The notes under the pieces: model-generated
Seen by the model: the letters and a program-made list of their open reading frames with translations, nothing else
Databases searched by the model: none
What the model was told of the DNA's origin: nothing
Sequence record: PV112478.1
Length of the DNA: 64,000 bases
Reading direction: 5' to 3' (one strand)
Shown: positions 21,700 to 26,262 of the stretch, piece by piece
Numbering within the stretch: position 1 is the first letter of the stretch
Layout of the letters: each line of letters starts with the position of its first letter
Made by a program: the position numbers and the translations under genes

Positions 21700-22662
21700 T
21701 TACCCTTTGTTATTTGTACCCAGTTCACTGTATTGATCGAGTAAAAAGTTAAGATACGCCTCATGGGGATCAGTGCGGAAAATCATCTCATGAAGCACGG
21801 TAAAAGGTACAGGATTGTCAAAGACCCCGCCAGCAGCCTCAGCGTGCCCTCCACCGTTAAATCGCACCGCGGCTTGTTGTGCCAAACCTGTCCCTTTGCG
21901 TGACCGGAACGACAAACCGAGACCGTTCCGGTTTAACGTTACGTTCACGACCAGATTAACTTTGTCGTCTTGGGCCATGATTGTACTGGCCGCTTCAGAA
22001 GCGTAATAATACGGAGCAGAAATATACGCCACTGAGAAAGGACTTTCTGCCGCCTCTTCAATAATGACTGCTTTATTCAGGTGAAACGCAATATTTTTAT
22101 CCCGACCTTTTACTAACAGTTCGGCCTGCGGGCGGAGAATTTCTTCAACTTGTTCTTTGCTGTATTTAAACAACTCAATGAAAGGTGGGAAAATTTCATC
22201 CTTATCCCCCTTCTTCAAATACTGAACAAAGAGTTCATGGTAATTCCGTTCGCTCTCTTCTGCAATCCAGAGGTCGCGGTTATTGATTAAACGAATCACT
22301 TCTGGCATAGGGGTAGAATTAACATATTTCCATGCTAAACCCGCCCCTGAAAGTTCTGTGTCGAAATAAACAACCGTCGCCCCGAAGAATTTTTGGATCT
22401 TATCACATTCTTCTTTTTTGTCTGCATGATGATCGAGTATCACGATAGACCGTATACGTGCCGCGTTCTTCTCAACCCATTCAAACGGTGGGGTGAAATC
22501 GACAAAAACAATATGCACCGGTTCCTCATTTTCTAAGTCCGGCATAGCGCGGTAGTTTACCGGGATGAAAGTCTGCAGCCTTGTATATTGATACATGATT
22601 GCCGCTGCCGCGAAACCGTCCATGCAAAGGTCGTGGTAATAAACGATTATTTCATTATTCAT
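21700..22662 (-). CDS. DHH/DHHA1 phosphoesterase
   Basis: YH..CMDG, VDF, LDHH, SGA.LAW, NRDLW, RS...GGGHAEAAG motifs. Confidence 0.85.
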   Translation of the reverse strand: MNNEIIVYYHDLCMDGFAAAAIMYQYTRLQTFIPVNYRAMPDLENEEPVHIVFVDFTPPFEWVEKNAARIRSIVILDHHADKKEECDKIQKFFGATVVYFDTELSGAGLAWKYVNSTPMPEVIRLINNRDLWIAEESERNYHELFVQYLKKGDKDEIFPPFIELFKYSKEQVEEILRPQAELLVKGRDKNIAFHLNKAVIIEEAAESPFSVAYISAPYYYASEAASTIMAQDDKVNLVVNVTLNRNGLGLSFRSRKGTGLAQQAAVRFNGGGHAEAAGGVFDNPVPFTVLHEMIFRTDPHEAYLNFLLDQYSELGTNNKG

Positions 22663-24007: not shown

Positions 24008-24430
24008 TTAGCTCCGTGTGAAAATGTCTACCCCAAAGAATCCTGGGGCGTCTTTGTAACTGTCACCCAACTTCCAATAGTCATTGAAGGTGCGGCGTTT
24101 AAGGGTTATCACCCCTTCGTATTCGATCAAGGTTTTATCCGTAATGGCGATATCAGCTTTGATCCCTTTATCGGTCAGTCTGAAATTACCGATGAAGTGA
24201 GAAGGCGTCACGATCTTTCTAAAACGTGCGAAGAATTCGTTAGTATTTTCCCAAGCGAGTTTAGTTAATTGAGGATTAAGTTCACCCTCAAGAACTTGTC
24301 TGGTTTTAAACGCCCTTGATAACCGTTCGATATCGGCAGCGCGCAGGTAGTTCGGTAAGGGGAGATAAATATTAACTAGTTTACTAACATTAGCCGGTTT
24401 AAACACGTTGAATACCCTTTCATGAAACAA
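24008..24430 (-). CDS. hypothetical protein, possible degenerate S80/prohead-protease-fold paralog
   Basis: EGELNP...SHFI...RR...FGVDIF pattern; start codon uncertain. Confidence 0.5.
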   Translation of the reverse strand: MFHERVFNVFKPANVSKLVNIYLPLPNYLRAADIERLSRAFKTRQVLEGELNPQLTKLAWENTNEFFARFRKIVTPSHFIGNFRLTDKGIKADIAITDKTLIEYEGVITLKRRTFNDYWKLGDSYKDAPGFFGVDIFTRS

Positions 24431-24459
24431 AACAAATAAGGGCGAAAACGCCCTTAGAA

Positions 24460-24627
24460 TTAAATTTTACATGCCCCGCCTTCGCAGTCATCGCTGGCTT
24501 CGATTTCGGGTTGTTCTTCGATAAACGCTTCGGCTTTCGCTAACGCCGATTCCGCTTCTTCTTCGCTCAGAGTGAATGAATCAAAATCCAGACTTTCGTC
24601 TTTCTTTTCAGGGGTGGTTTGTGACAT
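24460..24627 (-). CDS. 55-aa acidic peptide ending in an NrdA-like redox tail, absent from ORF track
   Basis: MSQTTPEKKDESLDFDSFTLSEEEAESALAKAEAFIEEQPEIEASDDCEGGACKI*; AAGGA RBS; hairpin terminator at 24436-24456. Confidence 0.75.
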   Translation of the reverse strand: MSQTTPEKKDESLDFDSFTLSEEEAESALAKAEAFIEEQPEIEASDDCEGGACKI

Positions 24628-24740
24628 GGTAACGCTATCCTTTCTTTATTCTAGGCGGCTTGCCTCAAAGAAAGACAGAATAAACTTAAAAAAGAAAAAG
24701 ATCTAGGAGCGGAGAGGGTTTACCCTCTCCACCCACTTGT

Positions 24741-25211
24741 TTAGCCGAGATAGAAGCAATTACCGCCTTTATTTTCGGCGACGATTTTCTTGAGCCCGTT
24801 AGTTGAGAAAACAACGAAGGTCTCCGGATGACTTTGCACGTAAACCTTAACGGTTTTTGCTTTGGTTTTCTTAACGCCTTCGAAGAACAAGCGCCAGTTA
24901 CTTGCCCCAACTGTAGAAGCAGGAGAGATCATCTGGTACTTCTGACCGGCCATTTCGATAACCAGCGCGTAGCGATCATCATCGCTGGAAAGCGAGTTGC
25001 CGTTAGTACCGTTCAGAAACAGCGCTTGAACCGGCCATTGGTCGCCAGTATCTCGGCAAGAGAATGCGAGCGAAAAACCGTCGCTGTTTTCGGTGTAGAA
25101 TTCCAGAGTACCCTGCTGATAAGATTCGGTCCAATTATTGACGATGGCCATGGCATTGAAGGACGCGATAGAGGACAGGGCGATGAGTGAAGCAGCAATG
25201 AATTTTTTCAT
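24741..25211 (-). CDS. exported protein (signal peptide, two Cys)
   Basis: MKKFIAASLIALSSIASFNAMA leader. Confidence 0.7.
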   Translation of the reverse strand: MKKFIAASLIALSSIASFNAMAIVNNWTESYQQGTLEFYTENSDGFSLAFSCRDTGDQWPVQALFLNGTNGNSLSSDDDRYALVIEMAGQKYQMISPASTVGASNWRLFFEGVKKTKAKTVKVYVQSHPETFVVFSTNGLKKIVAENKGGNCFYLG

Positions 25212-25279: not shown

Positions 25280-25588
25280 CTAGTACCAGTAATTACGGGA
25301 ATGAAACGATTCTCTTGCTACCGCTTCTCTTGTTTTCTGATAAACGAGACCTTCGAAGACAGCGCGCATGATCCAGAAAGCGACATGACTGATCAGGTAG
25401 CCTATTTTACTTAAGAAACAAGTCCAATCACGGAGTTTTCTTATCGAGCGACCTTTCCAGGAATTATCGTAAAGGACTTCTGGTGTTGCGCACTTTGCAG
25501 TTAACTTTTTGTTAGCGATGTAGGTTAAGAAAGTGATCATCGCCAGGACAGCAAAAGTAACAACAGAAATGAACAGATAGAATTCCAT
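25280..25588 (-). CDS. small membrane protein
   Basis: N-terminal TM helix; C-terminus NYWY shared with 25990-26262. Confidence 0.7.
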   Translation of the reverse strand: MEFYLFISVVTFAVLAMITFLTYIANKKLTAKCATPEVLYDNSWKGRSIRKLRDWTCFLSKIGYLISHVAFWIMRAVFEGLVYQKTREAVARESFHSRNYWY

Positions 25589-25989: not shown

Positions 25990-26262
25990 TTAGTACCAAT
26001 AGTTATTAATTTCCAGCTCTACTTCAATTACGTATTTAAAAACCAACGCGGAAACAGGCACGAAGATAAAGAGGATTGCGTAATATGGTACAAACGCGCA
26101 GCCCAACAGAGCAGAGATACCGACCAAGCAAGAGAAGATGTAACAACCTTTAATGATCTCATTTCGTTTTTCGATACCGAATAACTTATTACGATCAACG
26201 GCAACAGCAATGATAATCGCTATCGCTGCTAATAAGCCCATTACGATAGTAAAGATTAACAT
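25990..26262 (-). CDS. small multi-TM membrane protein
   Basis: Three hydrophobic segments. Confidence 0.7.
   Translation of the reverse strand: MLIFTIVMGLLAAIAIIIAVAVDRNKLFGIEKRNEIIKGCYIFSCLVGISALLGCAFVPYYAILFIFVPVSALVFKYVIEVELEINNYWY

Follow-up and report, generated by a model that had tools for sequence, protein, structure and literature searches.

Why does a jumbo phage that lacks a ribonucleotide reductase (RNR) of its own encode a small protein whose end copies the redox tail of the host enzyme? The window, a stretch of 64,000 nucleotides, is bases 1-64000 of the Klebsiella phage LPKP23 genome (PV112478.1, 300,747 bp). The sequence-only reading had pointed out an ORF at 24460-24627, without giving its strand, and had described it as a free-standing NrdA-type tail with its own ribosome-binding site and terminator. 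This observation proved correct. The ORF lies on the minus strand, starts with ATG, and encodes 55 residues (about 6.0 kDa; D+E 17, K+R 4) ending in DDCEGGACKI directly before the stop codon. The ORF had been thought to be missing from the gene track, but the public record annotates it as hypothetical protein JNLGKPLP_00031. The features of the locus are as follows.

24460..24627, minus strand: complete ORF with stop codon, encoding the 55-aa acidic protein; an identical protein occurs in 10 Siatvirus-type records.
24463..24507, minus strand: conserved C-terminal block (residues 41-55), including the NrdA-type redox tail (last 10 residues, with Cys48 and Cys53).
24514..24564, minus strand: predicted single alpha-helix (residues 22-38).
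24568..24600, minus strand: N-terminal acidic/hydrophobic motif (residues 10-20), loosely conserved in the family.
24638..24642, minus strand: Shine-Dalgarno-like AAGGA, 10 nt upstream of the ATG.
24427..24456, minus strand: intrinsic-terminator-like hairpin (8 pairs, 5 G-C, loop of 4) plus T-rich run; the hairpin, at 24456-24437, starts 3 nt after the stop codon and is followed by TTTGTTTTGT.
24688..24730, minus strand: hairpin (8-bp stem, TAAA loop) and T-run that end the upstream gene; the terminator scan did not list it because the T-run starts more than 2 nt after the stem, and it was read directly from the sequence.

The upstream gene (24741-25211) encodes a 156-aa protein with a signal-peptide-like start, which was assigned to phrog_3429 of unknown function. 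Because that gene ends with its own hairpin and T-run, the ORF looks like a separate transcription unit. No sigma-70-like promoter lies upstream of the ORF, and an upstream 12-mer is not enriched in the window. AlphaFold2 prediction on a 56-sequence alignment gave one helix at residues 22-38 (block-mean pLDDT of 87 and 83 for residues 21-40), while the ends had lower confidence (block means of 52-71) and no secondary structure. Elsewhere in the window, two small hydrophobic, membrane-like ORFs at 25280-25588 and 25990-26262 (both minus strand; 102 and 90 aa) end in the same four residues, NYWY, and may be paralogues with a shared C-terminal motif. A 320-aa DHH/DHHA1-like phosphoesterase, below the Pfam cut-offs, is encoded at 21700-22662 (minus strand). 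The same gene stays a few kb from the peptide gene in a related metagenomic contig (L137), and the "putative phosphohydrolase" gp124 of FBKp24 occupies the same relative position, although its sequence was not compared.

To examine whether the end of the protein is indeed the NrdA tail, we scanned one genome per bacterial species with a degenerate 30-nt back-translation of the tail. Direct searches of the PDB with the peptide or the family profile did not return NrdA, as the match is too short for HMMER thresholds. The scan returned at least 120 loci, and in all 120 examined the motif is directly followed by a stop codon. About 112 of the matches close NrdA-length ORFs, or ORFs cut by a locus end whose preserved C-terminal residues match the NrdA end, from Yersinia, Serratia, Klebsiella, Rahnella, Vibrio, Pseudoalteromonas, Advenella and others. 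The two that were tested with Pfam, from Klebsiella sp. (locus L031:3855-6137) and Yersinia similis (locus L011:2760-5045), carry the ATP-cone, Ribonuc_red_lgN and Ribonuc_red_lgC domains, and the Klebsiella protein scores 1630 bits against E. coli R1 (PDB 2r1r_A, 761 aa). E. coli R1 ends in DGCESGACKI with cysteines at positions 754 and 759, the Klebsiella sp. NrdA ends in DDCESGACKI, and the Yersinia NrdA ends in DDCEGGACKI. The last 10 residues of the window protein are thus identical to those of the Yersinia protein at 10/10 positions, of the Klebsiella sp. protein at 9/10 and of E. coli R1 at 8/10, with Cys48 and Cys53 aligned to Cys754 and Cys759. The pattern carries about 39 bits, so that about 2e-7 matches are expected in the window, and chance is excluded.

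The protein is not itself an NrdA. Pfam detected neither the catalytic barrel (PF02867), the all-alpha domain (PF00317) nor the ATP-cone (PF03477) in the 55 residues, although the tail criterion of class Ia NrdA, a redox-active cysteine pair with four residues between them at the extreme C-terminus, is fulfilled. A tblastn search with the Klebsiella NrdA and NrdB found nothing in the window except the 10-residue tail. The sequence-only reading had proposed, as one option, that the peptide partners a tail-less phage NrdA encoded elsewhere, and had named the phage nrdA as the place to look. The same search of the complete 300,747-bp genome, assembled from the window and the remaining record segments (L129-L133), found no RNR body, and this option is refuted for this phage. 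A second carrier from another lineage, Erwinia phage pEa_SNUABM_25 (263,017 bp), likewise has only the tail; an apparent second NrdA-end hit in it was noise. The published gene table of a third carrier, Yersinia phage phiR1-37, lists no reductase and no redoxin (PMC4848604), and no RNR gene lies in any of the viral flanks fetched. Class III RNR was excluded only by the absence of any nrd annotation and not by a sequence search.

LPKP23 does carry other genes for dNTP supply, thyA, dut and tmk. The gene annotated as thyA (L129:27350-28729; record 91350-92729) is 459 aa long, much longer than a typical thymidylate synthase, and may be a fusion or a related methylase/hydroxymethylase. A tubulin-like gene and split RNA polymerase beta/beta' genes (L133:32761-33729; L130:36145-40632; L133:8822-11092; L133:21127-22581), the signature of nucleus-forming jumbo phages, mark it as chimallivirus-like. 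The record also annotates a suppressor-type tRNA with anticodon tta ("tRNA-Stop"; L132:43160-43243, record 257160-257243) and a block of nine tRNAs (L132:38687-40169). A CxxC motif scan of all ORFs of 60 aa or more found no thioredoxin or glutaredoxin candidate, although this is a weak test, and defence-system models (PADLOC) gave nothing for the peptide.

The distribution of the peptide among jumbo phages and the conservation of its cysteine pair had both been put forward as tests of the idea. A tblastn search of 50,697 phage records found, in addition to the 10 identical proteins, close relatives in FBKp24 and Centimanus and small free ORFs with the same end in Klebsiella phage Miami (46 aa), many Erwinia jumbo phages (45-52 aa) and phiR1-37 (g117, 51 aa). 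A word-based profile search of 5.8 billion proteins gave 57 clusters of 43-94 aa, many on contigs of 250 kb or more, and a full HMMER scan of 1.84 billion representatives gave 49 hits at E up to 1e-3. The window protein scores E 1e-25 to 6e-12 against its closest relatives. We defined from these a family of at least 62 distinct small proteins (43-94 aa, median 53 aa, acidic excess 8-14) with a central helix and the tail directly before the stop codon, a description that the window protein fits. Most of the members that were traced lie on phage or phage-sized contigs. Both cysteines are present in 62/62 members, so the pair passed the conservation test, and their spacing is 4 in 58/62. Gly51 is shared by 61/62, Glu43 by 59/62, Ile55 by 58/62 and Glu41 by 57/62, and the last two residues are Lys-Ile in 50/62. 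The N-terminal half varies much more (Asp14 in 47/62, Leu20 in 39/62).

One member (P0027, 47 aa; L134:8001-8144) lies 2 nt after a MYG1_exonuc-like gene on contigs of 325 kb (read here) and up to 581 kb (cluster record). These contigs also carry acetyltransferase and RND efflux genes, and the neighbours have no PHROG hits. It may be a bacterial chromosomal copy. Two PHROG families of unknown function, phrog_14561 and phrog_24014, match the tail of this protein or of other tail-bearing phage proteins over their last 13-24 profile positions, but the matches are weak (E 0.003-0.05) and limited to the tail.

In the last 16 codons, synonymous codon differences outnumber non-synonymous ones in most pairs. 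The values are 8 against 1 for Miami versus pEa_SNUABM_23 and for pEa_SNUABM_23 versus phiR1-37, and 4 against 0 for the window versus FBKp24, indicating that the ORF is under selection as a protein. The family profile aligns to most NrdA ends over only the last 11-13 residues and to some Vibrio, Pseudoalteromonas and Pseudidiomarina NrdA ends over 20-24 residues. The rest of the protein is family-specific. We also tested whether the N-terminal motif mimics the C-terminal end of NrdB. A profile of that part, run against 15,580 six-frame ORFs of the 120 bacterial loci (nrdB lies directly downstream of nrdA in the one locus examined), hit no ORF except one in locus L048, a phage-type copy of the family itself, and the idea was not supported.

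The tail is not confined to this family, a point that the sequence-only reading had not foreseen. The same DNA pattern occurs 16 times in 2.9 million viral contigs, never on an NrdA and always on small ORFs with a stop codon right after the motif. Several of these have unrelated N-terminal parts: a Phage_gp49_66 domain protein (L153:1193-1582, E 7.6e-27) on a contig that also encodes a 3,819-aa giant protein, which we take to be an N4-type virion RNA polymerase; a 123-aa protein beside a DNA polymerase exonuclease subunit gene (L148:5787-6155); and a 61-aa protein just downstream of a DNA-polymerase-like gene (L154:2984-3166). Furthermore, 12 representatives of 115-360 aa carry the whole 47-residue module at the C-terminus, behind at least two different domains of unknown function (110 and 200 aa). 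Used as a "Rosetta stone", these fusions gave no functional clue: the N-terminal domains have no Pfam hit and only one other homologue cluster, and the AlphaFold2 model has a mean pLDDT of 62 with no Foldseek match to the PDB below E 0.1. In the contig that carries one fused form (P0060), an AcrVA2-like (anti-CRISPR-type Pfam) gene (L155:1526-2809) lies two genes upstream, which hints at an anti-defence or early region. Conserved gene neighbours were sought as functional partners, but the proteins next to the gene in Miami, in the Erwinia phages, in LPKP23 and in the 325-kb contig are unrelated to each other.

The only transcript data found concern phiR1-37 g117 (L005:2989-3144). Its mean normalised values are 3.9, 1.5 and 1.2 (early, middle and late), against 110 and 34,486 for its same-strand neighbours g115 and g118, although a predicted host-type promoter lies upstream. 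This homologue is therefore almost silent in laboratory infection, which was likewise unforeseen, counts against a role needed in every infection and must be weighed against the strong sequence conservation.

What could such a protein do? In class I RNR, the active-site cysteines are oxidised after each turnover; the two tail cysteines are reduced by thioredoxin or glutaredoxin and then swing into the active site to re-reduce the catalytic disulfide. The tail cycle, and the gain from a second reductant acting while the tail is away, have been described (PMC11903788, PMC4078304). The analysis itself demonstrates that the tail is a copy of the NrdA tail, that the gene is under protein-level selection and conserved across several jumbo-phage lineages, and that the checked carriers lack class I RNR; the function that we attach to it is inferred. 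In the reading that we tentatively prefer, the protein is a stand-alone mimic of the host NrdA tail that is recognised by the same two host partners and would serve as an extra, untethered electron shuttle, keeping host RNR turning over while the tail of the enzyme is away being re-reduced. This would raise the deoxynucleotide supply for replication of a 300-kb genome. Keeping both cysteines at the native spacing fits a substrate that completes both half-reactions better than a one-cysteine trap. There is no functional evidence of any kind; disulfide exchange with thioredoxin, glutaredoxin or the NrdA active site was not assayed and only the sequence prerequisites were checked. The native tail is tethered and so has a large local-concentration advantage, and a free copy could just as well compete with it. 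The tail does not track the variant of the known host: Klebsiella phages carry the Gly-Gly variant while Klebsiella sp. NrdA has Ser-Gly, and phiR1-37 carries the variant seen in Vibrio NrdA. The model also does not explain the conservation of Glu41, Glu43, the helix and the N-terminal motif, and the attachment of the tail to unrelated domains fits a docking tag at least as well as a catalytic shuttle.

The main rival, which is possible but less likely, has the opposite sign. The free tail would compete with the native one for thioredoxin/glutaredoxin or for the NrdA active-site entrance, throttling host RNR and host DNA synthesis as part of host takeover while the phage lives on precursors from other sources. 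The sequence evidence for mimicry is the same, and small, very acidic phage proteins are often inhibitory mimics. The extra conserved parts could supply binding energy for an inhibitor, an untethered tail is at a kinetic disadvantage as a reductant but can still occupy partners, and the phage carries the salvage-type genes tmk, thyA and dut. On the other hand, the checked carriers have no RNR of their own, so blocking the host enzyme would cut their own de novo supply. A thioredoxin trap would work better with one cysteine, yet both are invariant at the native spacing, and with both present a mixed disulfide should resolve quickly. The interpretation in the sequence-only reading was thus partly supported: the view of a real, free-standing, translated copy of the class Ia NrdA redox tail with no NrdA body attached held, the partner for a tail-less phage NrdA did not, and its trans-acting reductant and its decoy both still stand. 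The protein most likely enters the host thioredoxin/glutaredoxin-to-NrdA electron relay, but the sequence does not decide whether it boosts or blocks that relay.

A somewhat more doubtful reading takes the tail as a short linear motif that recruits host thioredoxin or glutaredoxin (or NrdA) to whatever it is attached to, the window protein being the minimal form of a modular adaptor whose real business lies in its N-terminal module. The unrelated tail-bearing proteins, the fusions and the lack of a neighbour gene conserved between lineages agree with this. However, no partner or cargo function is known for any of the fused domains, and the minimal 43-55-aa forms are by far the most common and carry no obvious cargo. 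A thiol function unrelated to RNR with a convergent motif, such as a metal- or cluster-binding C-terminus in a dimer, a redox sensor or a precursor of a modified peptide, is unlikely. Only 10-13 residues match NrdA in most comparisons and the family has its own conserved features outside the tail, but the identity includes non-cysteine positions, the exact spacing and the position at the very C-terminus, and the variants between the cysteines in the peptides (Glu-Gly-Gly-Ala, Glu-Ser-Gly-Ala, Asp-Gly-Gly-Gly) are the same ones seen in bacterial NrdA. As to a modified-peptide precursor, no maturase-type Pfam family appears among the called neighbours in four family contexts, but only three proteins of the window were scanned, which leaves this possibility neither supported nor excluded. 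A decayed nrdA remnant, which had been named in advance as a refuting outcome, is contradicted: although the tail must ultimately derive from, or imitate, an nrdA 3' end, no NrdA similarity lies upstream in any frame, the gene has its own start, ribosome-binding site and terminator, homologues occur in many phage lineages, and the tail codons are under purifying selection.

Compared with the C-terminal tail of class Ia NrdA (E. coli R1), the protein shares identical or nearly identical last 10 residues, the Cys-x4-Cys spacing, the Lys-Ile end, the position at the very C-terminus and a preceding acidic, flexible stretch, but it is a separate gene in a phage without class I RNR. A synthetic 25-residue NrdA tail peptide is deposited as a separate chain in PDB 1qfn_B, an entry that is the mixed disulfide with glutaredoxin 1. 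It supports the idea that a free tail can be handled by a host redoxin, but it is a laboratory construct, whereas the phage protein is a natural gene product with extra conserved modules. Phage-encoded redoxins that serve RNR, such as T4 NrdC thioredoxin and NrdH-type glutaredoxin-like proteins, are also phage investments in the electron supply of ribonucleotide reduction. They have a thioredoxin fold with a CxxC active site; the window protein has no Pfam hit, is modelled as a single helix with flexible ends and has cysteines separated by four residues. C-terminal peptides of the RNR small subunit that compete for the large subunit are a known principle of RNR inhibition (PMC9221315). They likewise illustrate that a free copy of a flexible RNR tail can act on the enzyme, but they copy a different subunit and a different tail.

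Ribonucleotide reduction is the bottleneck for DNA precursor supply, and phages are known either to bring their own reductase or to live on that of the host. Full-text searches of the library found no paper that contains the tail strings or describes a free-standing RNR tail in phages; what is new here is that a known enzyme part has become an independent, conserved phage gene. In the boldest form of the shuttle reading, which is doubtful, phages that lack RNR supply the host enzyme with a detachable spare part, a free copy of its own electron-shuttling tail that speeds the re-reduction half-cycle and so raises deoxynucleotide output. This would be a way of boosting a host enzyme that we have not found described, and the same tail, grafted onto other phage proteins, would serve as a general handle on the host thiol-redox relay. 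The protein would also give a natural, minimal probe for how the flexible tail, thioredoxin/glutaredoxin and the active site recognise each other, a step that has been hard to capture structurally. The presence of the same tail on unrelated phage proteins suggests a reusable host-docking motif, which is of general interest for phage-host mimicry.
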